DNA of 64,000 bases from Tubulanus polymorphus (taxonomy: Eukaryota > Animalia > Nemertea): positions 14,702,655-14,766,654 of the forward strand of contig NC_134033.1 of NCBI RefSeq assembly GCF_964204645.1, in the 5' to 3' direction. Every line of letters begins with the position of its first letter. Within the stretch, counting starts at the first letter, position 1. The notes under the pieces were generated by a model. It was given only the letters and a program-made list of their open reading frames with translations, had not been told where the DNA came from and did not search any database. This document shows, piece after piece, positions 4,341-63,790 of the stretch. The position numbers and the translations under genes are program-made.

Positions 4341-11976
<7,636 letters not shown>

Positions 11977-13750: not shown

Positions 13751-13756
13751 TTTATT
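13751..13756 (-). terminator. Probable polyadenylation signal of the giant-protein gene
   Basis: AATAAA on the - strand (overlapping AATAAATAAA) ~105 nt downstream of the stop codon. Confidence 0.55.
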
Positions 13757-13860
13757 AAACGGAATCAATTTATTTACAAACAAATTTCACGTTGTCGAGC
13801 TACAGTGAAAAATGAGATAAATGACATTCAGTATTTGCCGGTACGTCAAGCAGATACGTC

Positions 13861-15200
13861 TTATAGTGGCGCCGCCACGCGCCGGAAGCAGGAAAGATAA
13901 AATTCCGTGTTCGAGTCCTTGGTATTATTAGCATTTGTCATCAACGTTATCTGAAATGTCAACAATCGATGATTCAATCGATCATACTCTAAAGACATTC
14001 CCTACGTCAGGTGTTCAAGGAAATTCCCTAAAATCTCATTGAAAATTCTACTTTCAAGTTTTCATCACCTACCATAGTCAGCAGTTTTATCAAATCGTGT
14101 ATCGCTTCAACGTCAATAATTATATCTTGAAAATAACAAAAACAAAGGAAATTATGTTAAGGCTGGAGTTGAAAAAGATTGTTTTTATATTTTGAATAGA
14201 AAAACGTAAGAACATTTTCACATATTCAAAGGCCTACCATTTTATTCAACGTCGCTCTGAGCAAGTTCATCCCTTTATTTTTGTTGTGGGGTTTGCTTCG
14301 TTTGACGGCCGCTTGTCTCGAATTTGACACGATCTTCAATAACGAACTCACTCTATGCGCCTTTTTAGCTTGTGATTTGGCGGCTAGTTGATTCTGTAGA
14401 TAGACGATAGAAGATTAACTTATATAGAGAAGAAATGATAGCTTTTGGACCTAGAGACATTATTCGTCAATGTATTCTTCAAAAGGAGTGCTCCTAGAAT
14501 ATGATCATGTATTCAGACATTATTCAGATAAATATATTATTCCAATCATTCCCAGATCCCTTTGAACCGGTACTTAGCCAACGATTTAGACTTACTGTCT
14601 TAGCGGCTGACGGCTTCTGTGACTTTACATTTTGACCAAGCGGCATTCCCTGTGATGGAAAATGACGATCGTAAAGCAAAAACAAAAACTATTTGTAATT
14701 CCCTGATGGCCTGAACTCTTTCAACGATGAATGAATGAATCACCATAATCGATGGGAAAAAATCGAGATTTTAAATGTGGGTTCTTTAAGTAAGAGTAGC
14801 TCCATTTCTATGGGAAGGATACGGTTGAATAATTATTACAGTTACAACGCATTATGTACATCTTCTACCTTGACATCTGCCGCAGTTGCTTTCAATTTTG
14901 CCTCAGGTACCATCTTCATCACCGGTTTGTTGACGGTTACCGATCTATCTCTTTGACCTTTTGGCAACGCAATCGGCATTTTCACTGTTTTGACGACGTC
15001 ATCCAGCTTCTTAGCTTTCTCAGCACCGGTGCTGTTACCAGCTGAGACGTCAGACGTAGCATTTCCAGCAGTGGCGTTTCCAACAGTAGTATTTTCAGCC
15101 GTGGTGTTTCCAGCAGTAGCACCTTCCGACGAAGCATTCTTAGGTTTGAGGCCTTCGAGCTTTTTTCCAAGTTCATCCCGTAGCTCTTGTGGGCAGGGCA
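13861..15200 (-). CDS. Giant protein terminal exons (NxT/S pentapeptide repeats, basic tail, stop)
   Basis: Exon 14869-15200 lies within ORF 14842..15357; then 14596-14649, 14238-14393 and 13861-13950, ending ...FRRVAAPL*. Confidence 0.72.
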
Positions 15201-18200
15201 CTGTTAAGCGAATTGTATAACAGAAATAAGCATTTTGCATCCAATGATTGCAGCAGATAAACATTACGAGCTTGTGTACGACGTGTGAAGTTCGTGTCAA
15301 ATCCACTTTGTTCAGATTGTGCAACTTGGGAGTAGATGCAGGAAAATGCAAACCCACTCCGTCTTAAATTGAGCGCAAATTGTTGAGTATGGTTACTTCC
15401 AGATGGAACACGCTATAGACATGCATGTTTTAGCAGCCGATCAACATGCACAGGGTGATTTTTTTTCTATTTTGATGCCATTATCTTTTATACACACGAT
15501 TAAGATCTCTAAAACCAAAAGATATAAGTTAATCTAGTTGTAGTGTAAACGATGATTTGAAAGAACTTACGTTTCATAGAATTTCCTTTGCCTGTGGGTA
15601 AATCGAAACAGAAAAGACAGTAACAGGTGAGACTGGTTTAAATAAGACAAAAAACGAAGACTCAATCGAGTGACCCAGTGCTATGCTTACTTATGCAGAG
15701 ATCTCCGTACAGATTCCAACCGCGTGGACACTTGAATTCTAAATAATATAGAAACATCAGAAATTATTATTCAAATGTCTTTGTTGTAGTTTAATCTTTC
15801 GGAACCATACGCACTGTAACATTTGCCGTCATGTCTAATCCATGAAACTTCACACGTCTTCTCTCCCTCCTTTATTGGTTGTTCTAAATGGAGAAAATTA
15901 CATTACGCTGCTACAAACAATTCTGACTAGTTTGCAAATCGGTACAAATTTTATGATATCAATTATGCCACAGACTATATGACGAGATGCATAAATAAAT
16001 GCACATTAAGGACATACCTTTGGCGCACATGCCGTTCATTGGTTTGTAGAGTGGATCACAGGAGTATACTATAAATGATAATACCAGTAATAAACATATG
16101 GATTATAATAACTACGTAATGCAAAATGCAAAAGTTGATAAATTAACGATTCATTTCAAGTAGTGCTTCCTTTATAAGCTTGCTATACTTAGATTACTTA
16201 ATCGACCTGGAAAAATAATCACCATCTGCTAACTCGGATATGGGTCTACGTAAGGTTGTGATGATTTTGATACTTACCAAACGTCGATTTACTCACGAAT
16301 CCGTACATCGCGTTCGCATTTGGCTTTTCTGAAATAGGAGAGTGTATATTCAACGACGATCCAATTTTGCACAATGACATCAGTGAAATATTTACCTGAA
16401 ATGGCATAATTAATTCTTTTCGAAACTTAATTGGTTAACAACGCAATGAAAGTGTTTTATAGGCCTAATAAACTACTAGGTGTTAACCCAATACCATGAA
16501 AAATACCGATATACAGACAATGACAAAATAAACGATAAATGATTAAGATCGAGAGAATAGATAAAATACCTGAACATTTATCGAATCCTACCATGATTGA
16601 TCCCAATGGACAGACACGTTCTGAAATTTAGATACAAAACAAACCATATAATTCGACATCGGTAATGCCACAATTAAAAGGGCCCTAAAATCTTGGCGTG
16701 AAAAAATAAGAAAAAAGCAAACCGCTGTCAATTCAGTTACGTGGTTTTGATAGGCGGAGGTGAATAAATAAATCATTCGATCACTCTGCTTTACCAAACA
16801 GAATTTTTGATTCCCATTCAGAAAAAGCCAGTAATTTTTTTCTCGTTAATTGCCTTTCCACCTGGTCTGGGCGTTATCCATGGCAAACGGAGGCCCCAAA
16901 TCATACTTACTTATGCATGCTCCATCGATAAGATGCCATTTAGGTGGACAATCCTTCCAGGAGCGCGGTAGAGAAAATCCTAAAATAAACAGTGATCAAA
17001 GAAGACATTTATATCTGATAAGCTTGATTGAATAGAAACAGGTTGGGTCGAAGATTCATTCACTTACGCGCTGCACAGAATCTCTTATTCAGTGGTTGAA
17101 ATCCATCAGGGCAATTAACTACAACAAACGAATGAGTATCAGTGTCAATATAAATTAAATATTCGGTAGTATCTCGAAATCTTCAAATTTCAAGCTTGTT
17201 TTACTAACGTTTTAATTTTGATGTACAATGTTCGTTTTCTGAAATGTTAAGTTCAAGTATTGAATGTGGGATGATAAAAACAGGTGAGCTGAAGTAACAG
17301 TAAAACCAGCAGGCCTGGGCGAACATACCTGTGCAATGTATACCAAGACAATCAAGGATCTTTCTCTGGTAGGTCGTAAATTTAGAATACGCCTTGTCCA
17401 TATCAGCCAGTTTACCCCCTTCCGATTTCAATTTTTCATATTCATCTTTAGCAGATGCATATTGTTTCATATTACTATCTGTCAGACACTTAAAAGGACT
17501 CGCTAGTGATGGGGGCTTAGGCTTCCCTGCCGATTTGGACTTTTCAGCAGCTTCTAATTTCTTTTCTTCCTTCTTTTCATCTTTGGCGGCTTCTTCGACT
17601 TTTTTCTTATCCTCGGTGACTTCTTTTTTAACTTCTTCAACTTTTTTCTCAGCCCCCGGCTTTCCTTCGGCCTTTTCTTTCTCAGCTTCCTTGAGTTTAT
17701 TTTCCTTTTCTTTGAGTTTCTCAGTTTTCTCCTCTACTTTCTTCTTGGCTTTTTCTGTTTTTTCCTTTTTCTCCTCGACTTCTTTTGCGGCTCCTTTTTT
17801 GGCTGGAGCTGGAGCACCGGTTTCCTCTTTCTTTTTGGCCTCGTCCAATTTCTTTTCTTCTTTCTTTTCATCTTTGACGGCTTCTTCGACTTTTTTCTTA
17901 TCCTCGGTGACTTCTTTTTTAACTTCTTCAACTTTTTTCTCAGCTCCCGGCTTTCCTTCGGCCTTTTCTTTCTCAGCTTCTTTGAGTTTATTTTCCTTTT
18001 CTTTGAGTTTCTCAGTTTTCTCCTCTACTTTCTTCTTGGCTTTTTCTGTTTTTTCCTTTTTCTCCTCGACTTCTTTTGCGGCTCCTTCTTTGGCTGGAGC
18101 TGGAGCGCCGGTTTCCTCTTTCTTTTTGGCCTCGTCCAATTTCTTTTCTTCCTTCTTCTCATCTTCGGCCGCTTCTTCGACTTTTTTCTTATCCTCGGTG

Positions 18201-21200
18201 ACTTCTTTTTTAACTTCTTCAACTTTTTTCTCAGCCCCAGGCTTTCCTTCGGCTTTTTCTTTCTCAGCTTCTTTGAGTTTATTTTCCTTTTCTTTGAGTT
18301 TCTCAGTTTTCTCCTCTACTTTCTTCTTGGCTTTTTCTGTTTTTTCCTTTTTCTCCTCGACTTCTTTTGCGGCTCCCTCTTTGATTGGAGCTGGAGCACC
18401 GGTTTCTTCTTTCTTTTTGGCCTCGTCCAATTTCTTTTCTTCCTTCTTTTCATCTTCGGCGGCTTCTTCGACTTTTTTCTTATCCTCGGTGACTTCTTTT
18501 TTAACTTCTTCAACTTTTTTCTCAGCCCCAGGCTTTCCTTCGGCTTTTTCTTTCTCAGCTTCTTTGAGTTTATTTTCCTTTTCTTTGAGTTTCTCAGTTT
18601 TCTCCTCTACTTTCTTCTTGGCTTTTTCTGTTTTTTCCTTTTTCTCCTCGACTTCTTTTGCGGCTCCCTCTTTGATTGGAGCTGGAGCACCGGTTTCTTC
18701 TTTCTTTTTGGCCTCGTCCAATTTCTTTTCTTCCTTCTTTTCATCTTTGACGGCTTCTTCGACTTTTTTCTTATCCTCGGTGACTTCTTTTTTAACTTCT
18801 TCAACTTTTTTCTCAGCCCCCGGCTTTCCTTCGGCTTTTTCTTTCTCAGCTTCTTTGAGTTTATTTTCCTTTTCTTTGAGTTTCTCAGTTTTCTCCTCTA
18901 CTTTCTTCTTGGCTTCTTCTGTTTTTTCCTTTTTCTCCTCGACTTCTTTCGCGGCTCCTTCTTTGGCTGGAGCTGGAGCACCAGTTTCTTCTTTCTTTTC
19001 ATCTTTGACGGCTTCTTCGACTTTTTTCTTATCCTCGGTGACTTCTTTTTTAACTTCTTCAACTTTTTTCTCAGCCCCCGGCTTTCCTTCGGCTTTTTCT
19101 TTCTCAGCTTCTTTGAGTTTATTTTCCTTTTCTTTGAGTTTCTCAGTTTTCTCCTCTACTTTCTTCTTGGCTTTTTCTGTTTTTTCCTTTTTCTCCTCGA
19201 CTTCTTTTGCGGCTCCTTCTTTGGCTGGAGCTGGAGTGCCGGTTTCCTCTTTCTTTTTGGCCTCGTCCAATTTCTTTTCTTCCTTCTTTTCATCTTTGAC
19301 GGCTTCTTCGACTTTTTTCTTATCCTCGGTGACTTCTTTTTTAACTTCTTCGACTTTTTTCTCAGCCCCCGGCTTTCCTTCGGCCTTTTCTTTCTCAGCT
19401 TCTTTGAGTTTATTTTCCTTTTCTTTGAGTTTCTCAGTTTTCTCCTCTACTTTCTTCTTGGCTTTTTCTGTTTTTTCCTTTTTCTCCTCGACTTCTTTTG
19501 CGGCTCCTTCTTTGGCTGGAGCTGGAGCGCCGGTTTCCTCTTTCTTTTTGGCCTCGTCCAATTTCTTTTCTTCCTTCTTCTCATCTTCGGCCGCTTCTTC
19601 GACTTTTTTCTTATCCTCGGTGACTTCTTTTTTAACTTCTTCAACTTTTTTCTCAGCCCCCGGCTTTCCTTCGGCCTTTTCTTTCTCAGCTTCCTTGAGT
19701 TTATTTTCCTTTTCTTTGAGTTTCTCAGTTTTCTCCTCTACTTTCTTCTTGGCTTTTTCTGTTTTTTCCTTTTTCTCCTCGACTTCTTTTGCTGCTCCTT
19801 CTTTGGCTGGAGCTGGAGCGCCGGTTTCCTCTTTCTTTTTGGCCTCGTCCAATTTCTTTTCTTCCTTCTTTTCATCTTTGACGGCTTCTTCGACTTTTTT
19901 CTTATCCTCGGTGACTTCTTTTTTAACTTCTTCAACTTTTTTCTCAGCCCCAGGCTTTCCTTCGGCCTTTTCTTTCTCAGCTTCTTTGAGTTTATTTTCC
20001 TTTTCTTTGAGTTTCTCAGTTTTCTCCTCTACTTTCTTCTTGGCTTCTTCTGTTTTTTCCTTTTTCCCCTCGACTTCTTTCGCGGCTCCTTCTTTGGCTG
20101 GAGCTGGAGCACCAGTTTCTTCTTTCTTTTCATCTTTGACGGCTTCTTCGACTTTTTTCTTATCCTCGGTGACTTCTTTTTTAACTTCTTCGACTTTTTT
20201 CTCAGCCCCCGGCTTTCCTTCGGCCTTTTCTTTCTCAGCTTCTTTGAGTTTATTTTCCTTTTCTTTGAGTTTCTCAGTTTTCTCCTCTACTTTCTTCTTG
20301 GCTTTTTCTGTTTTTTCCTTTTTCTCCTCGACTTCTTTTGCGGCTCCTTCTTTGGCTGGAGCTGGAGCGCCGGTTTCCTCTTTCTTTTTGGCCTCGTCCA
20401 ATTTCTTTTCTTCCTTCTTCTCATCTTCGGCCGCTTCTTCGACTTTTTTCTTATCCTCGGTGACTTCTTTTTTAACTTCTTCAACTTTTTTCTCAGCCCC
20501 CGGCTTTCCTTCGGCCTTTTCTTTCTCAGCTTCCTTGAGTTTATTTTCCTTTTCTTTGAGTTTCTCAGTTTTCTCCTCTACTTTCTTCTTGGCTTTTTCT
20601 GTTTTTTCCTTTTTCTCCTCGACTTCTTTTACTGCTCCTTCTTTGGCTGGAGCTGGAGCGCCGGTTTCCTCTTTCTTTTTGGCCTCGTCCAATTTCTTTT
20701 CTTCCTTCTTTTCATCTTTGACGGCTTCTTCGACTTTTTTCTTATCCTCGGTGACTTCTTTTTTAACTTCTTCAACTTTTTTCTCAGCCCCAGGCTTTCC
20801 TTCGGCTTTTTCTTTCTCAGCTTCTTTGAGTTTATTTTCCTTTTCTTTGAGTTTCTCAGTTTTCTCCTCTACTTTCTTCTTGGCATTTTCTGTTTTTTCC
20901 TTTTTCCCCTCGACTTCTTTCGCGGCTCCTTCTTTGGCTGGAGCTGGAGCACCAGTTTCTTCTTTCTTTTTGGCCTCGTCCAATTTCTTTTCTTCCTTCT
21001 TTTCATCTTTGACGGCTTCTTCGACTTTTTTCTTATCCTCGGTGACTTCTTTTTTAACTTCTTCAACTTTTTTCTCAGCCCCCGGCTTTCCTTCGGCTTT
21101 TTCTTTCTCAGCTTCTTTGAGTTTATTTTCCTTTTCTTTGAGTTTCTCAGTTTTCTCCTCTACTTTCTTCTTGGCTTCTTCTGTTTTTTCCTTTTTCTCC

Positions 21201-24200
21201 TCGACTTCTTTCGCGGCTCCTTCTTTGGCTGGAGCTGGAGCACCAGTTTCTTCTTTCTTTTCATCTTTGACGGCTTCTTCGACTTTTTTCTTATCCTCGG
21301 TGACTTCTTTTTTAACTTCTTCAACTTTTTTCTCAGCCCCCGGCTTTCCTTCGGCTTTTTCTTTCTCAGCTTCTTTGAGTTTATTTTCCTTTTCTTTGAG
21401 TTTCTCAGTTTTCTCCTCTACTTTCTTCTTGGCTTTTTCTGTTTTTTCCTTTTTCTCCTCGACTTCTTTTGCGGCTCCTTCTTTGGCTGGAGCTGGAGTG
21501 CCGGTTTCCTCTTTCTTTTTGGCCTCGTCCAATTTCTTTTCTTCCTTCTTTTCATCTTTGACGGCTTCTTCGACTTTTTTCTTATCCTCGGTGACTTCTT
21601 TTTTAACTTCTTCGACTTTTTTCTCAGCCCCCGGCTTTCCTTCGGCCTTTTCTTTCTCAGCTTCTTTGAGTTTATTTTCCTTTTCTTTGAGTTTCTCAGT
21701 TTTCTCCTCTACTTTCTTCTTGGCTTTTTCTGTTTTTTCCTTTTTCTCCTCGACTTCTTTTGCGGCTCCTTTTTTGGCTGGAGCTGGAGCACCGGTTTCC
21801 TCTTTCTTTTTGGCCTCGTCCAATTTCTTTTCTTCTTTCTTTTCATCTTTGACGGCTTCTTCGACTTTTTTCTTATCCTCGGTGACTTCTTTTTTAACTT
21901 CTTCAACTTTTTTCTCAGCTCCCGGCTTTCCTTCGGCCTTTTCTTTCTCAGCTTCTTTGAGTTTATTTTCCTTTTCTTTGAGTTTCTCAGTTTTCTCCTC
22001 TACTTTCTTCTTGGCTTTTTCTGTTTTTTCCTTTTTCTCCTCGACTTCTTTTGCGGCTCCTTCTTTGGCTGGAGCTGGAGCGCCGGTTTCCTCTTTCTTT
22101 TTGGCCTCGTCCAATTTCTTTTCTTCCTTCTTCTCATCTTCGGCCGCTTCTTCGACTTTTTTCTTATCCTCGGTGACTTCTTTTTTAACTTCTTCAACTT
22201 TTTTCTCAGCCCCAGGCTTTCCTTCGGCTTTTTCTTTCTCAGCTTCTTTGAGTTTATTTTCCTTTTCTTTGAGTTTCTCAGTTTTCTCCTCTACTTTCTT
22301 CTTGGCTTTTTCTGTTTTTTCCTTTTTCTCCTCGACTTCTTTATCGGCTCCCTCTTTGATTGGAGCTGGAGCACCGGTTTCTTCTTTCTTTTTGGCCTCG
22401 TCCAATTTCTTTTCTTCCTTCTTTTCATCTTCGGCGGCTTCTTCGACTTTTTTCTTATCCTCGGTGACTTCTTTTTTAACTTCTTCAACTTTTTTCTCAG
22501 CCCCAGGCTTTCCTTCGGCTTTTTCTTTCTCAGCTTCTTTGAGTTTATTTTCCTTTTCTTTGAGTTTCTCAGTTTTCTCCTCTACTTTCTTCTTGGCTTT
22601 TTCTGTTTTTTCCTTTTTCTCCTCGACTTCTTTTGCGGCTCCCTCTTTGATTGGAGCTGGAGCACCGGTTTCTTCTTTCTTTTTGGCCTCGTCCAATTTC
22701 TTTTCTTCCTTCTTTTCATCTTTGACGGCTTCTTCGACTTTTTTCTTATCCTCGGTGACTTCTTTTTTAACTTCTTCAACTTTTTTCTCAGCCCCCGGCT
22801 TTCCTTCGGCTTTTTCTTTATCAGCTTCTTTGAGTTTATTTTCCTTTTCTTTGAGTTTCTCAGTTTTCTCCTCTACTTTCTTCTTGGCTTTTTCTGTTTT
22901 TTCCTTTTTCTCCTCGACTTCTTTCGCGGCTCCTTCTTTGGCTGGAGCTGGAGCGCCGGTTTCCTCTTTCTTTGTGGCGCCGTCCAATTTCTTTTCTTCT
23001 TTCTTTTCATCTTTGACGGCTTCTTCGACTTTTTTCTTATCCTCGGTGACTTCTTTTTTAACTTCTTCAACTTTTTTCTCAGCCCCCGGCTTTCCTTCGG
23101 CTTTTTCTTTCTCAGCTTCCTTGAGTTTATTTTCCTTTTCTTTCAGTTTCTCAGTTTTCTCCTCTACTTTCTTCTTGGCCTTTTCTGTTTGTTCCTTTTT
23201 CTCCTCGACTTCTTTTGCGGCTCCTTCTTTGGCTGGAGCTGGAGCGCCGGTTTCCTCTTTCTTTTTGGCCTCGTCCAATTTCTTTTCTTCCTTCTTTTCA
23301 TCTTCGGCGGCTTCTTCGACTTTTTTCTTATCCTCGGTGACTTCTTTTTTAACTTCTTCAACTTTTTTCTCAGCCCCCGGCTTTCCTTCGGCTTTTTCTT
23401 TCTCAGCTTCTTTGAGTTTATTTTCCTTTTCTTTCAGTTTCTCAGTTTTCTCCTCTACTTTCTTCTTGGCATTTTCTGTTTTTTCCTTTTTCTCCTCGAC
23501 TTCTTTTGCGGCTCCCTCTTTGGCTGGAGCTGGGGCACCGCTTTCTTCTTTCTTTTTGGCGTCGTCCAATTTCTTTTCTTCCTTCTTTTCATCTTTTGCT
23601 GCATCCTTAACGTCCTCTTCAGCTTTTTTGATCTCTTGTTTAACCTCTTCAACCTTTTCTTTGGCCCCCGGCTTTCCTTCAGCGGTTGCATTCTTTGCTT
23701 CCTCAAGTTTTTCTTTCTCATCATTCAATTTTTCAGTTTTCTGTTCAACTTTTTCTTTTGCCTTCTCTTTTTCTTTCTCTTCTTTTTCAACCTCTTTTTT
23801 GGCTTCTTCTTTTGACGGTGTTGTTTTGCCAGTTTCATTTTTTTCCATTCCTTTTACTTCGATTATTTCTTTTTTCCCTTCTTTTTTTACCTCTTTCTCT
23901 TTCTTTTCAGCTGTCTTGATTTCTTCATTAGATTTTGCCTCCTCTTTTTTAAGATCCGCCATTTCTTGTTTTATTTCTTCACTCTGAACTTTGTCCGTCG
24001 TTTTATTCGATTGCTTTTCTTTAACAATATCCATCTTTATTTTAACTTCCTCTTTTTTAACTTTGGCATTTTCTGCTTCTGCTTCTGCCGCATCATCTGC
24101 CTTTTGAGCAGCGTCTTTAGCTGTTTCATCTGCTTTTTTCAATCCTTCCTTCACAGCAACCTTTAATACTTCTTTTTTTATTTCAAGTTTGTCTTCGGTT

Positions 24201-27200
24201 GCCTTATCACCAGTTGCCTTTGCAGTTTTGATGTCCTTTTCGATTGTTTTCAAATTATCTTTCTTTTCCTCTACCTTTTTATTTGTTTCCATGGACTTAT
24301 CTTTACTTTTCTTAGCTTCTTCTTTTGTGTTCTCCTTGTTATCTTTAGCCTCTACAATAGCTTTTTTGATAACTTTTTCAGCATCTTTTGCAGTCTTCTT
24401 AGCCTTTTCCTGCAGGTTAGCTGCTTTTTCCTCTTGCTTTTTGTCGCCTTTAGATGCTGCTCCCTTCATCATTTTATCGGCTTCAGTTTTCTCTTCTTCT
24501 GCCTTTTTCACAAGATCTTTGGCTTGTTCAGCATCTTTCTCGGCTGTGTCCTTTGTCTTTGTTCCTGTAATCTTTTTAGCAGCCTCATCAATATCTTTTT
24601 CTTCTGTTTTTACCACTGCAACCCCCTCATTTGCTTTTGCCACTGACTTTTCTAAGGTTTTAGTGAGTTGCTTCTCGGCGTTTTCGATGGCTGTTTTATC
24701 TCCTTTCTTTTCAACTTTGTTAACATTTGCTTCTGCTTTCTTTAATTCTTTCTTTTCTTCTTTTACTTGTTTTTCCTCTTTTTTCACTTTATTCATTTTC
24801 GTTTTTAACTAAAAAAAAATTCAAATATCAAGTAATGTTCAACCTAATCGTTTAAACGAAGGATCTCAAAATTTCAATAAATGTGTCAATGACAACTCCT
24901 ATTCTTTCTTACCCCCACCCAGCCCTTTCATTACACATTTCCGAAGTTGGAACTATCGATTTTTTAATGAGAGACCGCCGACAAACATAAGCCCTCACGA
25001 ATGCATTTTGATCACAATTTTGATTGAAAATTACATAGAAACATTATAAACAAATTGTGAAAGAGCTCTAATAGACTATAAACAAATGCGCCTCCACAAA
25101 TCTCTCGTAAAGGGAGCATTTGTTTTCAAACATCTTTTTAAATTAATGTAAGAATCATATTGCATCGATAGTTCGGCATTCGTGATCATTCCGCGGGAGG
25201 CCTTCGATCTCCCACCCACTTCCGCAAGTTATACTAATTGGAACAACTACCGAAATTTTGAGATGCTCCTTAATGAATGTATGCTGCGGGATTGCATAAC
25301 TCCTACCTTACTACTTTCCTTTTTGGCTTTTTTATCCTGCTTTCTGGCTTTCTTTATTTCCTTTTTCAATTTCTTAATTTTTCTCTTCTGACCTTTGCCT
25401 GGTTTTTCCTTCAGTTTCACAAGTGCTTCTTTTTTATTTTTTATTTCTTTTTTTAATTTGTCTTCGTTGCCCTTTGCTGTTTTCAGTGTCTTCTCGATGG
25501 CATCTTTACTGCCTTTCAAACTCTTTTCTGCTTGAACAACCGATTTTTCTGCACTTTCTTTTACTTTAGCCTTTGTTTCCGCTAACTCCTCTTTCATTTT
25601 GTCTGTCTTATTCTTACCACCTAAAATACAGATAATGTATATGATTATCTATTATCATCGTCGCAAAATGAAAATATGAATTGCTTACCTTTATTCTCTG
25701 CCTCGCTTATTTCTTTCTCGATTACTTTGGCTTTAGCCAAACTTTCCTCACTTTTAGTTATTTCTTTTTCGGTATCTTCAGCCTCTGTTTTGGAAGCTGC
25801 GGATTCCTCCTTCACGACCTCTGCCTTATCCTTTGCTAATTTCTCTTTCGCACTTTCTGCATCCTTTTCAGCTTCCTGAGCCTTATCTTCCTTTTTCTCG
25901 AGCTTTTCATCTAACTTCTCCACGGTTGTGTTGTCCCCCTTTTTTTCTGCTACAGCTTTCTCTTTCTCAAGAGATTTAACTTCGGCTTCATCTTTTTCCT
26001 TCTCAGCATTTGCCTTTTCACTCTTTTTATCTGCATCAGAAATCTTTGTTGCTTCGGCAAGCTTCTTAACATCTTTGTTAGCATCAACTGCTGTTTTGTC
26101 TGCTACATCAGCTACTTTTTTCATTTCGTCATTCATGACATTTTTAGCTTTATCAGCCTCGGATTTTGCTTTCTCTGCTGCTGCTTTCATTCCAGGATCT
26201 TTCGTTTCACTTGCCTTTTTCTCGAGGTCTGATGCCTCTGTTTCTTTCTTAACAAGTTTTTTGGCTTTTTCGTCCGTCTCCTTTTTCGTCTTTTCGAGGA
26301 CATCTTCCTCCTTTTTAGCTTTCTTTAGTGCCACTTCGGCTTCTTTAACAACTTTGCCCTTTTCTTTAGCTATGTCTTTTTCAGCTTTAACTTCTTCCTT
26401 CGCCCCTGGTTTCGTATCACCTTTTTCTTTAGCAGCTTCAGTGGTAGCCACTTTTGCGTCTGACTTGGCTTTATCCAATGTATCTTTTGCAACTTTAATC
26501 TGCTCCTTTACGGTATCGTTTGCTTTATCTAATCCCTTTTTGACCTCGTCTACGCCTTTCTTGATCGCCTCCGTTTCTTTCTCCTCTTTATCTTTCTTTT
26601 CTACCTCAAGCTTCACTACTTTAGCCGCATCACCTTTAGTTTTAGCTTCAACAATCTCTTTTTTTATGTTACTAACCTCAGTTGCAGCTAAATCTGCTTT
26701 GTTGGCTGATTTCTTAGCTGCCTCGGTATCCTTTTCTGTGTCTTTCTTATCTGTTTTTGCTCTGTTTTTATCTTCTTTTTCTTTCTTCTCAGGGTTAACA
26801 GTCTCTTTTGCGGTCTTTTCAACCTGAAAAAGTGTCTCAATGGATATAGCAAATACTCTCTTTAAAACGATAGAAGATAAAAGAATATCTTACCGACATG
26901 ACTGATTTAGCAACCGATTTCATTGAAGCGATTGCTTTTTCTTCTGTATCTTCTGAAGTGGTCTTCAGTTGTTTTCCTTCGGGTGATTGTTTACTCGCTG
27001 ATTTCAACTGTTTTTCAAGGGCATCGGCTTTTTTCAAAGCACTCTCAGAGACCTTCGCATTATTTGCAAGTTCTGCTTTCTTCTTTTCCGTAGCTTTTAC
27101 TTTATTCTCCCTGGCTTTAGAATCCTCAGCAAGTTTCTCTGCCTTTTCTTTTAGGTCTTTTGCTTTCACATCATCGCCATCTTTCTCTGCTTTTTTAGCA

Positions 27201-30200
27201 TCTTTTAAATTCTCATCAGCCTTCTTTTTGTCATCTTGTGCTTTTTTCTTTTCAATTTTTTCACTTTTATCTGCCACCTTTGCTGCTGACTTCACAGCAT
27301 CCAACTGATCTTGCAAAGCCTTACTTTTAGAATCTTTTTTCTCTTTCTCCGCCTGCTGCAGTTTGGTTTGTACTTCACCTACAGTCTTTTGATCACCTTT
27401 TCCTTGCTTGACTTTAATGGTTACTTCCTGTAATTTATCTTTCAGTTTATCAACCTTTTTAGCTGTCATCTTAACAGTTTCAGCACTTTGAGATGCCTTT
27501 TCCGCTTCAGATTTAGCTTTGGATGCCTCTTTTTTAACCTCTTGCTTCTCAACCTTTTCTGCTACTTTAGTTTTTTTGTTTGCCATTGTGTTCAACTCCT
27601 TTGAGCTTTCAGCAGCCTTTTCTGCTTTTACTTTCAGCAAAGAATCATTTGAAGCTTTTGCATTTTCTGCCAATTTCTTTGCCTTTTCCTCTTCGGTTTT
27701 TGCTTTTGATTTGAGATCGGTTGCCTCCTTCTTCAATTCAGTGGCTGGGACGTTTGTAAGGCTTGCGATGTTTGAAATTGCCGGTTTAATAGTTTTTTCC
27801 ATGTCTTTAGCGTAGACTTTAATGTCTTTCTTTATTTTTTCTCTCTCATTCTTCATACCGATTCGTAGCGACTTTTCTTTTTCTTTGTCACCTATTATGT
27901 AGATCACGCATTACATACAGCAACATTAAAAGTACTTGTTATTATACTTACTAAAATTGGCATGTAAGAAATGCTCAAATTAGCAGATTGATTACTCGAA
28001 ATATCAATTAAAACATATATATCGAATAAAACATACAAATATATAATCTGTGTACTAAAGATAATTGTAAAAGTCCTACAATAGAATTTCATATGATAAA
28101 ATGTTTTATTACATTACTATTAGCCAACAGCCAAAACGTTGTGGTTTCGTTGTAATAAATTTTATCAAATGAAATTCTATTGTGGGACTTCGATTAAATA
28201 TGAATAAAGACATGGTGGATACCTTTGGTTTCGGCATCTTTTGCAGCAATTTCGTCATCAGAGATTTTCTGTGCAAGTTTCTGCACCTCCTTTTCCTTTT
28301 TGGCTATTTCATCTAATTGCTTTTTCACATTCACCGATGATTTCTTCTTTTCTTCAGTTTCCTTTTTCATTTGTTCGGATTCAGTTTTATCTTTCTTACC
28401 AATTTCTTTTTGTGTTTCATCTTTGGATTTTGCAAGTTCCTATTAAAAATGTGGTTAAGATATATTATTCATACAATAAATGAGACAACCACAGTATTAT
28501 CTGTAACCATGTTTACCTTGGCTTCCAAATCCTTATTAGTTGCTTTTGTTTCTATCTTTGAAGTTTGAACTTCAAGAAGCTTGAGCAGATTTTCAAAAAC
28601 AAGTTTTGCCTGTAGCAAAGCCGCTTGATACACTGTAATTACATGGATTATCAATTTCCGTCGCCCATCCCGCTTTGCATCTAGTTTAGCTTTGGCTTGT
28701 GTGATGAGTTTCTGATCATTCTTTGCAGTTGCTTTTTTAAGTTCAGCCCGTGCATCAGCCACTTCTGTTTCCTCTTTCTCGTACTGAATCCAAGAAGTAC
28801 ATAATATACTAGTGTTGGGGTAGAAACATCGAAGCACGAACATTTTTAATGATAAAAATCTTATTCTACCTTATTTAAATCGTCTACGGTTTCCTTTGTT
28901 TTCTTCTCTACCTCCACAACATCGTGCTCAACCCTTTTAGCTTTATCTTCCTTCGCCTGCGTGTCTTCATCGTCGATTTCGTCTTTCTTTTCAGCTTTGT
29001 CATCTTCAAGTTTTTTTACCTCTCGCTTTAACTCTTTCGATTCTTTTTCGGTTTTTGAATCATTTGATTTACTGGATTTTTCTTCAACCTTGGCGAGTTC
29101 ATCTTGCTTTGACTCGATTTTATCATCAATCTTCTTTAGATCTTTCTTCTTTTTATCAACTTTCTCCTTACTTTTCTCTTCTGACTTTACGTCATCAGCT
29201 TTCTCTTTAACCTGTTTCTCCATTACAGTAGCCTTTTCAGCTGTGAGTTTTACTTTCTCCTTCTTGATATCAGCCTTTTTCTTTACTACCTCAGCTTCCT
29301 TTGCCTTAAGGAATATCAAATTGAAATGAGTACATTAAAAATGTCACAACTAAATAAAAAATTGTATTTTATGATCAGTATAACTAATAAATCACATCTT
29401 TACCTTGCCACTGCTCTTTAATTCAGCAGCTTTTTTCTGCAGTTCTAAAGCTTTTTCTTCATCCTTCTTCTCCTTGTCTTTTATATTTTCTACTTTCTTC
29501 TCTAACTTCTTAACTCCTTTCTCTTCTTCTTTAATGACCTTTGCCTTTGCTTTTTTCATATCGTCTTCTGTTTTTTCGACATCCTTAGTTTTTGATTTCA
29601 CTTCATTTTCCAATTTGTTTGCAATCGCTTTGTCTTCAGGTTTTCCTGTTTTCAGTGCTTTAGCTTTGGCATTGCTAGCTTTTACTTCAGTTTTTTCAAG
29701 ATTTTTCTTCTCCGATTCTTCCTTAGCCTTGCTTTCTTCCACCTTTTTCTCTGCTTGCTTCTGTTTTTCGACTGTTACCTTTTCGTCTGCCTTTTCTTTT
29801 TTGCTTGCTAGTTCCTCTTTCTTAGTTTCCAATTTTGATAGATTTTTCTTTATGTCATCAGCTTTTTTATTTGCATCTGGTGATCCTTTCGCGGCAGCTT
29901 TTTCTAAGTCAACTTCTTCCTTTTCAATTTTCTCTTCGGTTGCTTTTTCCTCCTTGTCAACCTTTTTCACTTCTTTTAGGTCCTTTGCTACTGTTTCAGA
30001 TGATTTCTTTTCTTCCTTTGCTTCTTTAACAAGCTTCTTTGAATCAGCCTTCATTTTATCAGCATCGGTCTTTGCCTTATCAGCTGCTGCTTGAGCCTGG
30101 GCAGCCTTTTCTTTGTTGCCTTTATTAGCTTCATCCTTTGCCTTTGCTTCCATTTTCAAAGCTTTTGTTTCTTCTGTCTTTGCTTTTTGTTCGTCTTTCT

Positions 30201-32899
30201 TTGCTTTTTCTTCAAGGTCTTTTGCACCCTTCTTTTCAGCTACTTCCTTAGTTTTTTCCGCCTTTTCAGATTCTTTTTCCTTCTCTTTTACCTCTCCTTT
30301 AACTTTTGTCACCTCCTTTTTGGCCTCTTCCACCTTTGCTTTATCTTCGGGTTTATTTGATTCTGCAGCCTTCGTTTCTGCTTCGGCAACTTTTTTAGTT
30401 GCATCTATTTTCTTCTTTTCAGCGGCCTTGAGATCATCATCAATTTTATCTGATTTATCTTCTTTTGACTCTTTCTTGCTTTCCTTTTCAGTTGCTACTT
30501 TATTTTTGTCCTCTTTGGTTTTTTCAATTTTCTTTTCAATTTTCACCTCAGATGCTTTAAGGGCTTCCACCTTCGTTTTATCCGCTGGACTTCCAGATGC
30601 GTTTGCCTTACTTTCAGCTTCTTCTATTTTCTTTTCAATGTCAACCTTCTTTTTTTCTTCGCCCTTAATTTTTTCATCAGCTTTCTTTGCTTGTTTTTCG
30701 ACATCTTTGTCACCTTTTTTCTCAACATTATTTTCAGCCTTCTTCAACTCTTTGACCTTTGCTTTGTCTTCCGGCTTTCCAGATTCCTTTGCTTTCTTCT
30801 CTGCCTCTTTAACCTTCTTCTCTGCCACCTTCTTCTCTTTTTTATCTTCCTCGATTTTCTTAGGTGCTTCCGCCGTTTCATTTTTCGTTCCATTTTCAGC
30901 TTTTTCTACTGCCTCATCTTTTTTCTTTTCAGCATCTTCTGCTTTTTTTTCTAATTTCTTTACTTCGTTCATGTCCTCTTGTTTCCCTGATTCCGAAGCT
31001 TTTTTCTCAGCCTTCTCTAGTTTTGAGGCAAGAACCTCGACCTTCTCTTCGGCCTTCTTCTCTGATTTAGCAGTCTCATTTCCAGCTTTTGTCTCATTTG
31101 TGGCAGATCCGCTGGTTTCAGCAGATGGTTTCGTCTCATTTCCAGCTTTCGACTCATTTTTAACAGACTCACTTGTTTCAGCAGAAGGTTTAGTCTCATT
31201 TCCAGTTTTCGTCTCATTTTTGGTAACCTCGCTTGATTCAGCAGTTGATTTTGTTTCATTTTCACCTTTTCCTTTCTCGCCTACTTTTGCTTTTTCCTTC
31301 ATCTCTGTCTTTTTAGATGCTTCGTCTAATTTACTGGTTGCTTTAACAACCTTTTCTCTTTCTTCTAGTGCTTTTTTCGTATTTTCCTTGATGTCTTTTT
31401 CTGCTTCGGTGGCTTTCTTTGTCATATCAGCTTTGCCCCCTTTTGATTTGATTAGATTTATAAGATCTGTAGTCAAATCAGCCAGGAACTGCATCTTCGT
31501 TGTAATCTTTGTTGTCATATCATCTAATTCCAATGCCTGTAACAATCATGTATGACGTACATTTTCGGAATCTTGTAGAACATAGTGTGTTGTAATTGTA
31601 TCAGGATTTTACCTTGTTATCGGCAGCAACTTTTGTTTCTGCAGCCACCCAGGTATGAGCCATATCCTCAGGCGATTTAGATTTTTCTGCTTTTGTTTTC
31701 GCCGCATTGTAGGCAACCTCTAATTGCTTGGATTGATCCCTGACACTAGCCACTTGTTTTGAGAGTTCTTTGACGATTCCAAGTAAAATACCAACCTTAA
31801 AGAATTTAGATTAACAATGACTTAGGCCTACTCATATCATACAACTTGTTAGAATGATCGACTCAAGTCTCAAACTAGTCTCTTAATGTATTTGAACTTA
31901 TCAGAATGATGTCACAATACACTTCCTGCCTTACGTTTTTCTTGGTTTGTTGAATTTCTTTCAATAGCTTATCTGGATCTTGTGTTTTGTAAATCTTCAT
32001 CTTTTCTTCTTTTTCCTTTTGTAATTTGACAACGTTCATCATCATCCAGCCTTCTCCCAAAACTGAAACGAACATTTCGATAATATTTCGACTTAATACA
32101 TATTTACTTTCTGGTAACATACACCGGAGAATATGAATTGTAATTGAGCACGAGTCATCAATTGAGGAACGTGTGCAGGAAAACTATTAACAATCAGAGA
32201 TGCACCATCTATAATGAAGCTACCTTTTGTACATTGTTTACGTGTCTGCGTGAGGCTTACGTCAGGAAATTTCACTCCAGTGTTGACTACCGTACCAGCA
32301 CTCTTAGTAGCATTAGTTGAAGCATCTACAAATGGCATATTCTTATGACTTAGTCAGATAAAACGTATTATGAAATAATTCACCATCAACATTATGATAT
32401 TGTAACAAATGCAACAAAGATCAGTAATATATTTGCAAATGGTTTGCATTTTTCATCGTCTTAAATCAATCGCGATACGTAAGAATCGTGTCTTTTTATT
32501 GATAATTACCGGTAATAACGACGCGTTCGCATTGTCCTTTAGAGTCCAGTTTATATCCGGTCGAACACTGTATAGCAGGCTTCATCATCGCAGCATCTGT
32601 ATATGAACATGAAGTATCCCGTCATAAAAAAATCATTCCGGTACAGTAATACAGTTACATTACATAACTTTGGTACAGTCATCTAATATGGCAATTTTGC
32701 TGTTCTTATGATCTAAAATTTGCTCTGCTTATTGAACTGACTAAAAACAACAATAGCGAATCGATTCTTTTCTTTAGGGTGATATTTTACTGTAGACCTG
32801 TAGAATTTGGCCCTGTACATCTATCATTTGTTTACCTTTTGCAGAGGAAACTGCAGCTGAGGAGATGACTAGCATCAGCACTAAGCCAAGCCTTGTCAT
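13861..32899 (-). CDS. Giant secreted Lys/Glu-rich repeat protein, ~4,829 aa, 24 coding exons, family not recognised
   Basis: Exons 5'->3': 32836-32899, 32510-32596, 32261-32325, 32123-32183, 31935-32062, 31613-31795, 29404-31536, 28870-29304, 28517-28783, 28223-28439, 26894-27891, 25689-26823, 25307-25620, 17329-24808, 17068-17118, 16911-16979, 16278-16328, 16018-16068, 15691-15738, 15571-15591, 14869-15200, 14596-14649, 14238-14393, 13861-13950. All introns are GT-AG with compatible phases; total 14,490 nt, open to TAA. Starts with signal peptide MTRLGLVLMLVISSAAVSSA; AATAAA lies ~100 nt after the stop. A few donors (28517, 31935, 14238) have alternatives. Confidence 0.85.
15571..17118 (-). 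CDS. Giant protein C-terminal microexon cluster (six 21-69 nt phase 1-1 exons; four encode two-Cys loops)
   Basis: Translations VNCPDGFQPLNKRFCAA / RFSLPRSWKDCPPKWHLIDGACI / KKPNANAMYGFVSKSTF / VYSCDPLYKPMNGMCAK / EFKCPRGWNLYGDLCI / SKGNSMK, each bounded by yag and gtaagt/gtaagc/gtatgt. Confidence 0.8.
17329..24808 (-). CDS. Giant protein exon 14, 7,480 nt, contains the 97-aa tandem array
   Basis: ORF 17204..24796; acceptor tttttttttag|TTA AAA ACG, donor TGC ACA G|gtatgt. Confidence 0.93.
17552..23539 (-). repeat. Coding tandem array: 21 units of 291 bp (three are 258 bp); a diverged unit precedes it to ~23830
   Basis: 291-bp periodicity is visible directly and in the spacing of the shadow ORFs (17734, 18025, 18316, 18607...). 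33-bp deletions near 18990, 20120 and 21250. Confidence 0.97.
25307..29304 (-). CDS. Giant protein exons 8-13 (KE/KA-rich helical region)
   Basis: ORFs 28861..29319, 28469..28843, 26837..27907, 25645..26616 and 25247..25597, plus exon 28223-28439, linked by short GT-AG introns in phase. Confidence 0.88.
29404..31536 (-). CDS. Giant protein exon 7 (711 codons, KE-rich, NET sequon repeats)
   Basis: ORF 29392..31545; ttacag|GCA and AAG|gtaaag, phase 0-0. Confidence 0.9.
31075..31265 (-). repeat. 60-bp (20-aa) coding repeat rich in N-E-T/S sequons, ~3 copies
   Basis: gtctcatttccag recurs at ~31074, 31134 and 31194; protein KNETKTGNETKPSAETSESVKNESKAGNETKPSAETSGSATNETKAGNET. Confidence 0.85.
32836..32899 (-). 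CDS. Giant protein signal-peptide exon (MTRLGLVLMLVISSAAVSSAK)
   Basis: ttttcttag| acceptor at 32913, ccaagATG, basic residue then hydrophobic core and small-residue cleavage site, AAAG|gtaaac donor. Confidence 0.8.
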
Positions 32900-33360
32900 C
32901 TTGGCTGGTCACCCTAAGAAAATGTTAAAGAAAAATGTATTCATTGCACCGGGTAATGAAGGTGTCTAACACAACATCGTATTTTTTCATATCCTATGAT
33001 AAATTTGTTGAACACATTTTGGATAAGGTTTACCTCTGATTAAGCCCATCTATCCGAATGCTCTAGTAAAGTTCGCTAGTTCGATTTGACATTTTGAAAA
33101 ACGATGCCTATCTTGATTCTTTTATTGATTACAAAATGGAGAATAACTAGACTAGGCTAGCTGGGCTTGAGGTCTGTCATGTTGTAATTAGGGTCTGAAA
33201 CCCTTGTTGTATCAAAACATTTATCGCAATTAAGGGAAACTTTACTCAAACCTTACTTTACCCAACATTTATTTCAACTTTATTCGACTTGAAATGTGGC
33301 TCATATTTAACAAATGATACAATTAAAAGTCACATATAAACCACGGAAAATGAATTTTAC

Positions 33361-36405: not shown

Positions 36406-63790
<27,385 letters not shown>

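Follow-up and report, generated by a model that had tools for sequence, protein, structure and literature searches.

Several lysine- and glutamate-rich reading frames lie on one strand of a 64-kb window (the whole stretch of 64,000 nucleotides analyzed here) and raise the question of whether a single gene joins them and, if so, what kind of protein it would encode and where that protein would act. A preliminary description had proposed a single spliced frame of 14,490 nt in 24 exons for a secreted protein with Cys confined to its ends. The evidence assembled below suggests that a new secreted protein with a structural or gel-forming role is probably encoded at this locus.

Gene model and selection on the reading frame

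The plus strand is T/C-rich, with an AT skew down to −0.75 over 18–32 kb, and the minus strand carries the gene (Table 1). We reconstructed the gene by hand from the sequence and checked the model by script: all 21–24 introns are GT-AG with compatible phases. The longest model runs from ATG 32899 to a stop at 13861 (25 exons, 14,586 nt, 4,861 aa) with the frame open throughout; if the T9 donor at 14869 is unused, the frame stops at 14842 (22 exons, 14,313 nt, 4,770 aa), and skipping of optional exons gives coding lengths of 14,376–14,472 nt. The predicted protein therefore comprises 4,770–4,861 aa, with a mass of ~0.54 MDa and a pI of ~9. The previously proposed exon number and coding length fall within these ranges, and the start and stop coordinates given for that frame coincide exactly with those of the rebuilt model. 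We infer the joining of exons in the 22–25-exon model from DNA; the only public runs, three from one study, are also DNA (one intron-spanning contig, two Hi-C-like) and contain no splice joints over 27050–33049.

Both the E3/E4 junction and everything beyond 14869 have alternatives that shift the number of unpaired Cys. E3 would become shorter and lose its Cys if a second donor at 32261, in phase 0, were used, and the T10–T13 stretch, where AATAAA also occurs inside T11 (14279, 14246), is the least certain portion of the model. The E13 donor reads CAG/GTATGT in phase 1, with no in-frame stop there. Neighbors bound the gene at both ends: upstream, an EGF/TM gene on the minus strand terminates near 36.8 kb, and downstream lies a homeobox gene in convergent orientation.

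Table 1. Features of the predicted gene, by position in the 64-kb window
Feature	Position	Strand	Content	Basis
E1	32836..32899	-	ATG and signal peptide, 21 codons + 1 base, donor phase 1	sequence reading, signal-peptide rule scan
E2	32510..32596	-	phase 1-1; first single-disulfide loop, C-x11-C, G-Y behind first Cys	
E3	32224..32325	-	phase 1-1; N-glycosylation sequon and one more Cys	
E4	31935..32062	-	phase 1-0; K/E-rich part begins	
E5	31613..31795	-	phase 0-0	
E6	29404..31536	-	711 aa, non-repetitive, K/E/A/T-rich	
E7-E12	25307..29304	-	K/E-rich helical exons	splice choice
E7	29304-28870	-		
E8	28783-28517	-		
E9	28439-28223	-		
E10	27891-26894	-		
E11	26823-25689	-		
E12	25620-25307	-		
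E13	17329..24808	-	7,480 nt; 423 aa non-repeat, repeat array, 70-aa tail with 3 Cys	
Tandem array	17528..23539	-	within E13	TRF, unit table
Microexons	15571..17118	-	eight, symmetric, phase 1-1	
C1	17118-17068	-		
C2	16979-16911	-		
C3	16620-16570	-		
X4	16328-16278	-	Cys-free	
C5	16068-16018	-		
C6	15883-15815	-		
C7	15738-15691	-		
M8	15591-15571	-		
T9	14869..15200	-	one Cys, then sequon cluster	
T10, T11, T13	13861..14649	-	optional last coding exons, all phase 0	
T10	14649-14596	-		
T11	14393-14238	-	alternative donor 14352	
T13	13950-13861	-	stop and one Cys	
Polyadenylation signals	13751..13774	-	two AATAAA, ~90-110 nt past stop 13861	

A second DNA haplotype carries 15 exonic SNPs, 10 of them synonymous, 5 non-synonymous and none creating a stop, a synonymous share of 10/15 compared with 20–27% expected (P 1e-4 to 1.4e-3). 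SNP density in exons is half that of non-exonic sequence, none of the SNPs in E2 (one), E3 (one) and E5 (three) changes an amino acid in the model frame, and 6 kb of this haplotype is free of indels. The synonymous excess between haplotypes and the lack of stop changes show purifying selection on the frame. The 31 variant codons among the repeat units of E13 comprise 17 synonymous and 14 non-synonymous ones.

Secretory signals, terminal cysteines and the helical core

The signal peptide proposed earlier for the start of the frame stands out in the window: of the 2,038 ATGs on its two strands, a simple rule set picks out ATG 32899 alone as signal-peptide-like, with a basic n-region, a 14-residue hydrophobic core and small residues at −3/−1. 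It is also the top Kyte-Doolittle 19-residue window of the protein, and the profile of the whole predicted protein reveals no further convincing TM helix, as previously claimed; the second-best window (1.61, around residue 1088) is borderline hydrophobic and contains H, T, Y, Q, Q and K. Rule scan and hydropathy profile together describe a protein that lacks TM helices and starts with a predicted cleavable signal peptide, as expected for secretion by the classical pathway. Ten exons are symmetric with phase 1-1, seven of them microexons of 21–51 nt, and 7 of the 10 each carry one disulfide-loop motif; extracellular mosaic proteins are typically marked by phase 1-1 exons combined with a signal-peptide exon in phase 1. 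T9 adds six N-x-S/T sequons inside 35 residues, encoded by a 15/30-nt tandem repeat, and N-E-T sequons also occur in a 20-aa repeat (3.3 copies) within E6. Secretory routing is thus supported in silico by the phase-1 signal-peptide exon, the phase 1-1 exons with loop motifs and the six-sequon cluster.

Cys residues occur at positions 32, 44 and 82, are missing from the following 4,379 residues and number 16–17 from residue 4462 to the end, so that the previously described restriction to the ends holds and the accompanying counts (4 and 13) do not. Even if Cys made up just 0.5% of residues, a Cys-free run this long would have P < 1e-9, which, together with purifying selection in the frame, excludes chance as its source. 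The ends carry seven single-disulfide loop motifs, six of them each on a separate phase 1-1 microexon, and the same motif is present at both termini; in the six C-terminal microexons it reads C-(P)-x-(G)-aromatic...C with 10–11 residues between the Cys. Twelve C-terminal Cys pair naturally within loops, and 5–6 Cys lie outside them: residue 82, three in the E13 tail and one or two past the loops. A homodimer prediction for the 77-aa tail gave an ipSAE of 0.32 versus 0.02 for the best control, with contacts including Cys76-Cys76; it barely reaches our mark, in two of three runs and for a fragment delimited by an exon boundary, with at least 16% of contacts agreeing between runs and a partner pLDDT of at least 55. 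Among solved structures, 21 of 30 homodimers and 0 of 23 single chains from microbes reach the same mark, as do 7 of 16 animal ones. Disulfide polymerization is therefore only hinted at, by the unpaired Cys and this borderline predicted tail homodimer.

Lysine (28%), glutamate (21%) and alanine (12%) dominate the whole protein, with R at 0.7%, P at 2.3%, N at 2.6% and a K:R ratio of ~40:1. The core contains K 29.9%, E 22.4%, A 12%, T 5.1%, G 3.4%, S 2.7%, P 2.0% and almost no R, and with an FCR of 0.58 and an NCPR of +0.03 it is nearly charge-balanced. Its array consists of 21 near-identical units (18 of 97 aa, three of 86 aa) with 96–97% DNA identity, and three unit pairs (4 and 18, 6 and 20, 8 and 16) are fully identical. 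Fold, complex and homology runs used individual exons or fragments, and the joined model served for counting only. Each unit is modeled by AF2 as two helices of ~47 and ~42 residues with G-K-P-G and G-A-P-A-P turns between them (pLDDT 84.5), and E10 as helices of 45, 32, 79, 70 and 62 residues (pLDDT 87.4, pTM 0.60), from single-sequence input for which idealized K/E helices tend to score high. Hydrophobic residues recur with a period of 3.5–3.65 (z 12–18), opposite charges are enriched at i+3/i+4 (z 2.6–6.5), the hydrophobic face is narrow (VLIMFWY 10–16%) and an 11-residue periodicity is absent (period-11 z −2.2 to 0). Model confidence (pLDDT 84–87) and amphipathic periodicity indicate a core of predicted amphipathic helices of 40–80 residues broken at Pro/Gly turns, and the helical, nearly charge-balanced core of the preliminary description is borne out in silico.

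Relatives and comparison with known systems

A word-indexed search with length windows applied, using E6, the E13 non-repeat tail region and three repeat units as queries, returned no match, and an exhaustive phmmer search of 1.84 billion representatives with E6 was equally blank. E10 and the tail, queried by ESM Atlas features, retrieved no relative, an exact-ORF lookup in public assemblies came back blank, and Pfam gave nothing above threshold for all larger exons plus E2, E3, C2 and C6. Foldseek comparison of two AF2 models with the PDB produced just generic long-helix or designed-bundle matches (E > 0.1). Within the same genome, E6, E10, the tail and the repeat have no paralogs; the sole other match, 1.2 Mb away, is weak, stop-riddled and of low complexity. 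The gene thus appears to be single-copy and lineage-restricted, with no homolog, Pfam domain or paralog in the searches run.

Similar to gel-forming mucins and vWF, the predicted protein combines a signal peptide with a long repetitive core between Cys-bearing ends, and possibly end-wise disulfide multimerization. VWD, C8, TIL and CTCK domains were not found by Pfam in the larger exons plus E2, E3, C2 and C6, searched as individual exons, and the minimal two-Cys loops of the predicted protein differ from the VWD-C8-TIL and cystine-knot ends of vWF and mucins. Mucin cores are Pro/Thr/Ser-rich and O-glycosylated, whereas the predicted protein lacks such a core (P 2.0%, T 5.1%, S 2.7%), and minicollagens have a Gly-X-Y core, polyproline and six-Cys CRDs, whereas here there is no Gly-X-Y (core G 3.4%) and the ends are two-Cys loops. 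Of the parallel originally drawn with mucins, vWF and minicollagens, the layout of Cys-bearing ends survives and the VWD, CTCK, PTS and Gly-X-Y features do not, none being present in the exons examined; the comparison is best read as analogy only.

In velvet-worm slime proteins, terminal Cys build disulfide-linked complexes, and ES_P1, ES_P2 and ES_P6 are secreted, large and Cys-poor, with Cys solely at the N-/C-termini; ES_P6 is Lys/Glu-rich and has three Cys near its N-terminus (PMC9218773). The predicted protein likewise confines Cys to both termini, by analogy rather than homology: the slime proteins are Pro-rich (16–17%), mostly disordered or beta-forming and of 70–230 kDa (PMC9218773), whereas the predicted protein has 2.3% Pro, is predicted to be all-helical and measures 540 kDa. 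E6 showed no similarity to ER_P1/ES_P1 in the search against 1.84 billion representatives, and the host genome (268 Mb) belongs to a different kind of animal. Another giant, secreted, helical invertebrate protein family is that of the Dreissena byssus precursors, alpha-helical biomaterial precursors of 354–467 kDa that are Asn-rich (19–20%), form continuous heptad coiled coils and are encoded by intronless, probably horizontally acquired genes (PMC10691215). In contrast, the predicted protein has 2.6% Asn, is K/E-rich, breaks its array helices every 42–47 residues and is encoded by 22–25 exons.

Very high E+K and enriched i/i+3–4 opposite-charge pairs also recall ER/K single alpha-helix (SAH) domains. 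These are intracellular, use R besides K and have no hydrophobic seam, whereas the predicted protein has a strong 3.5–3.65 hydrophobic periodicity, its 40-fold excess of K over R, a signal peptide and regularly broken array helices; a literature search for secreted SAH domains gave nothing usable. Group 3 LEA proteins and exchangeable apolipoproteins, some of them secreted, share K/E/A/T-rich amphipathic helices with Pro/Gly interruptions, but Pfam scans with E relaxed to 1–10 returned neither LEA_4 (PF02987) nor Apolipoprotein (PF01442), and the predicted protein has no 11-mer periodicity, is far bigger, ends in Cys loops and has a hydrophobic fraction of just 10–16%. For the loops themselves, the same C-(P)-x-G-aromatic-x(6-7)-C hairpin, including its phase 1-1 exon encoding, occurs in the EGF C-terminal sub-domain, the GBP/PSP cytokine loop and the N-terminal hairpin of long-form C-type lectins. 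The predicted protein has the two-Cys loop only; a full six-Cys EGF domain or a lectin domain is missing, and Pfam scores for E2 are sub-threshold (GBP_PSP, 14.1 bits, cut-off 25; Antistasin, 14.2 bits, cut-off 21.2; E 0.04–0.07). The flatworm adhesive Mlig-ap1, a domain-rich K/R polycation with a pI of ~14, was ruled out as a relative (PMC6410801).

Candidate explanations and their meaning

We tentatively favor, at a little under an even chance, a single-copy, lineage-restricted gene for a secreted ~0.54-MDa glycoprotein that is end-linked into an extracellular gel, coat or fibre precursor. In such a protein, the core helices would fold back on one another at the Pro/Gly turns to form hairpins or bundles, with a narrow Val/Leu/Ala seam and dense i/i+3–4 salt bridges, and the core as a whole would be a polyampholyte of great length, strongly hydrated and weakly basic. 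Upon passage through the ER, the two-Cys loops would close on themselves and the 5–6 leftover Cys could form interchain bonds, giving dimers or multimers and, as the product, the proposed gel, coat or fibre precursor. Solubility would be maintained by the extreme preference for K over R, which may also provide lysines for cross-linking. We consider it unlikely that the protein represents an undescribed class of extracellular biomaterial, in which half-megadalton chains of salt-bridged K/E helical hairpins would be linked by their minimal two-Cys loop modules and free terminal Cys to give either a zwitterionic hydrogel or the precursor of a mechanoresponsive (helix-to-sheet) fibre; such a reading would place it in a small-genome, possibly spiralian, invertebrate.

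Somewhat unlikely is a secreted helical protein that forms no disulfide polymer and, as a monomer or dimer either in solution or bound to a surface, acts as a hydrating, lubricating, anti-fouling or desiccation-protecting coat, with LEA-like or apolipoprotein-like helices and terminal Cys that are intramolecular or anchor it to another matrix protein. Its composition and amphipathic periodicity resemble those of hydrophilins and exchangeable apolipoproteins, K/E-only polyampholytes are very soluble, twelve of the C-terminal Cys pair within loops and the short E3 would leave an even N-terminal Cys count, but the missing LEA_4/Apolipoprotein matches and 11-residue periodicity, the narrow hydrophobic face, the Cys beyond the loops and the predicted self-pairing of the tail all speak against it. 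The splicing model is built from DNA alone, K/E-rich helical proteins are mostly intracellular, and both the alternative E3 donor and the alternative stops and AATAAA signals at the 3′ end would allow a chimeric model: translation from an internal Met would make E4–E13 a coiled-coil-like protein of the cytoplasm or nucleus, and the exons with the signal peptide and the Cys would go unused or be part of other transcripts. We regard this as quite improbable: the strong phase-1 E13 donor is reached without a stop and followed by eight phase-1 microexons, the loop motif is common to both ends, the only signal peptide in the window lies on the right strand at the right place, the SNPs in E2, E3 and E5 are synonymous throughout, and the Cys-loop and sequon exons fit the secretory pathway only and have no other start or signal peptide. 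The near-identity of the units, complete in some pairs, and the lack of homologs in the searches run would also suit a decaying or never-expressed repeat expansion, or an array length produced by assembly, yet a 14.3–14.6-kb open frame, the indel-free 6 kb of the second haplotype and the synonymous excess both between haplotypes and among units make this very improbable.

If expressed and secreted, the protein would embody a rare structural principle, a charge-balanced, arginine-free, all-helical repeat core whose chemistry would be unlike that of mucin, collagen, silk or elastin. The locus also illustrates that a 0.5-MDa gene can escape homology-based annotation. Zwitterionic polymers are valued synthetic anti-fouling and hydrogel materials, and a natural, genetically encoded one would be of interest for biomaterials research; the protein would likewise provide another case of a recurring design in which a huge Cys-free core is combined with Cys at the ends only.

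Gene model and genomic setting

Reading the 5′ and 3′ parts of the K/E locus base by base, scoring candidate junctions and assembling the exons by their coordinates, we obtained a gene model that runs from an ATG at 32899 to a stop codon at 13861 and comprises 25 exons, 14,586 nt and 4,861 codons for amino acids. All introns are GT-AG, 68-498 nt long and consistent in phase. If the donor at 14869 is left unused, the frame ends at 14842 in a shorter model of 22 exons and 4,770 residues, while skipping of optional 3′ exons gives lengths of 14,376-14,472 nt; the 24-exon, 14,490-nt frame of the preliminary description represents another version of this model and shares its end points. The less certain parts are the donor of the third exon, E3 (32224 in phase 1 or, with E4 bypassed, 32261 in phase 0), the small 3′ exon X4 and all sequence after 14869, and AATAAA signals lie at 14279, 14246, 13774 and 13756. 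By a simple signal-peptide rule, the ATG at 32899 is the sole signal-peptide-like start among 2,038 in the window. Exons E2 and E3 and all eight 3′ microexons (C1 to M8) are in phase 1-1, and loss of any one would leave the frame intact, and E2 and six of the 3′ microexons have one two-Cys loop motif in common, which ties both ends to one gene. The interval would be a single gene, its splicing predicted from the DNA.

The locus shows strong strand asymmetry, with a T/C-rich plus strand (AT skew to -0.75), an asymmetry explained by long purine-rich runs of K/E codons on the minus strand. Open frames on that strand follow one another across the locus, the largest in the ORF list extending from 24796 to 17204 (2,530 codons). 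Many long ORFs also occur on the plus strand and in other minus frames at 30747-31280 and 17400-24000 (e.g., 17394-23987 on the plus strand, 2,197 aa); as genes these were rejected, being by-products of the purine-rich repeat. The K/E gene is bounded on one side by a paired-like homeobox gene, with the first half of the homeodomain at the end of its first exon (Pfam Homeodomain, E 7e-07) and the second half in a later exon, and on the other by an EGF-repeat transmembrane gene. Long dinucleotide microsatellites of (TA)n-like and (CT/GA)n-like type at 59577-59981 and 37715-38081 give spurious long ORFs in several frames.

Features of the K/E locus and its neighbours (window coordinates)
Feature	Position	Strand	Remark
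Paired-like homeobox gene	8794-11976	+	convergent with the K/E gene; OAR-like C-terminal motif, in the later exon
Tandem array	17528-23539	-	within exon E13
EGF-repeat transmembrane gene	36759-46907	-	upstream neighbour, same strand as the K/E gene
EGF-like exons of upstream gene	~37444-37797, 39048-39350, 39639-40118, 44527-44802, 46605-46907	-	
Last exon of upstream gene	36759-37010	-	transmembrane-like segment

Purifying selection on the K/E reading frame

Public runs with K/E sequence come from one study only, and a DNA contig from one of them (X1) spans the introns throughout 27050-33049; two other runs of that study carry GATC-GATC-type junction ends typical of Hi-C, and none of the three showed an exon-exon joint. 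The contig represents a second haplotype or individual, with 25 substitutions (0.42%) and no indel in 6 kb. Ten of its 15 exonic SNPs are synonymous, where chance would give a share of only 20-27% (P = 1e-4 to 1.4e-3), none creates a stop codon, and the five non-synonymous changes are all conservative (A/E, E/D, K/N, K/E and E/K). SNPs number 3.4 per kb within exons versus 6.5 per kb outside, and in the small 5′ exons E2, E3 and E5 all five SNPs are synonymous in the frame of the model. A comparison of the first 20 repeat units of E13 (excluding unit 21) gave 31 distinct variant codons, of which 17 are synonymous. Purifying selection on the K/E reading frame is thereby shown.

Protein anatomy and predicted structure

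The mature protein has a mass of ~535-545 kDa and a pI of ~9.0, and is composed of K (28.2%), E (20.6%), A (11.7%) and V (6.5%), with R at 0.7%; the near-absence of arginine (33 residues, versus 1,369 lysines) argues for selection on solubility and/or lysine chemistry. Cysteines are confined to both ends, as the preliminary description held, although its counts are corrected here to three at the N-terminus (residues 32, 44 and 82) and 16-17 from residue 4462 onward, leaving a Cys-free span of 4,379 residues. Three of the C-terminal cysteines lie in the tail of E13; six C-(P)-x-(G)-aromatic...C loops follow, one per microexon and with 10-11 residues between the Cys pair, and downstream of these come one more Cys, a 35-residue stretch with six N-x-S/T sequons, and finally a basic C-terminus. 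By motif reading, 5-6 cysteines outside the loops are left unpaired.

In the core, the fraction of charged residues is 0.58 and the net charge per residue +0.03. Its E13 array comprises 21 tandem units, 18 of 97 aa and three (8, 12 and 16) of 86 aa, at 96-97% DNA identity. The short units have in common an 11-codon deletion after codon 81, and three unit pairs are identical in DNA (4 and 18, 6 and 20, 8 and 16), with one-base differences in 9/17 and 11/14, a higher-order structure that reflects recent block duplications.

AlphaFold2 (AF2) predicts six helices of 41-47 residues with 5-6-residue turns for three repeat units (pLDDT 84.5, pTM 0.46) and main helices of 45, 32, 79, 70 and 62 residues for exon E10 (pLDDT 87.4, pTM 0.60), both from single sequences; high scores are common for idealised K/E helices. 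Independently of AF2, repeat and non-repeat parts show a hydrophobic periodicity of 3.5-3.65 residues (z 12-18 versus shuffles), and at i+2 to i+4 opposite charges are enriched and like charges depleted, so the helices would be amphipathic with a narrow apolar seam. Such a seam is easier to reconcile with hairpins or bundles than with isolated ER/K single helices, and Foldseek searches with both models returned nothing beyond generic long-helix bundles.

Modelled as two copies, the 77-aa E13 tail, a fragment cut at the exon border, gives a predicted homodimer with an ipSAE of 0.32 (best control 0.02), just at a mark attained by 21 of 30 solved microbial homodimers, by none of 23 solved microbial single chains and by 7 of 16 animal homodimers. 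The mark was reached in two of three runs, with at least 16% contact agreement between runs and a partner pLDDT of at least 55, and the predicted interface includes a symmetric Cys76-Cys76 contact. The model supports a possible self-pairing of the tail. The secreted, disulfide end-linked polymer proposed in the preliminary description is partly supported: secretion and helicity are likely, given the signal peptide, the AF2 models and the periodicity, and disulfide polymerisation is only hinted at, by the unpaired cysteines and the tail prediction.

Relatives, comparable systems and a candidate mechanism

An exon-by-exon Pfam scan found no domain, E6 had no match among 1.84 billion representatives, and three word-indexed searches and the ESM Atlas yielded no relative; the Cys-rich ends were searched as single exons, most microexons being below searchable length. 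The animal's own genome (268 Mb, 77 contigs) holds no paralog. A weak K/E-like match to the repeat unit (51% identity, E 1e-8) lies ~1.2 Mb away at G000:C9:15922672-15923020 (+); riddled with stops, it probably reflects low sequence complexity, not a paralogous copy. Kinship is hinted at solely by the E2 loop, whose similarity to the GBP/PSP and Antistasin models stays below threshold. We take the two-Cys loop motif to resemble the last EGF-domain loop and the N-terminal hairpin of long-form C-type lectins, as a lead only.

Velvet-worm slime proteins likewise combine a huge Cys-free core with cysteines at the ends only, and their terminal cysteines build disulfide-linked complexes, but they are Pro-rich and disordered (PMC9218773), whereas the K/E core is predicted to be helical; one of them, ES_P6, is K/E-rich with three N-terminal cysteines (PMC9218773). 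Dreissena byssus precursors are giant secreted helical proteins of 354-467 kDa (PMC10691215), yet they are Asn-rich, intronless coiled coils, unlike this K/E-rich product of 22-25 exons. Kinship with flatworm Mlig-ap1 was rejected, as that protein is a K/R polycation (PMC6410801) and the K/E protein a polyampholyte. Checks of the K/E protein for the hallmarks of mucin/vWF, minicollagen, LEA_4, apolipoprotein and SAH proteins were negative in every case.

We propose that the protein would enter the ER via its signal peptide, its core forming a series of helical hairpins or bundles; the two-Cys loops would close, the C-terminal stalk would be N-glycosylated, and the remaining cysteines could join chains into a polyampholyte network that is weakly basic and strongly hydrated. 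Invertebrate genomes not infrequently contain giant orphan repeat genes. The locus works like a known kind, the end-cysteine giant secreted repeat protein, yet stands outside every described family, and a K/E helical-hairpin core, as predicted here, is unusual in a secretory protein and directly testable.
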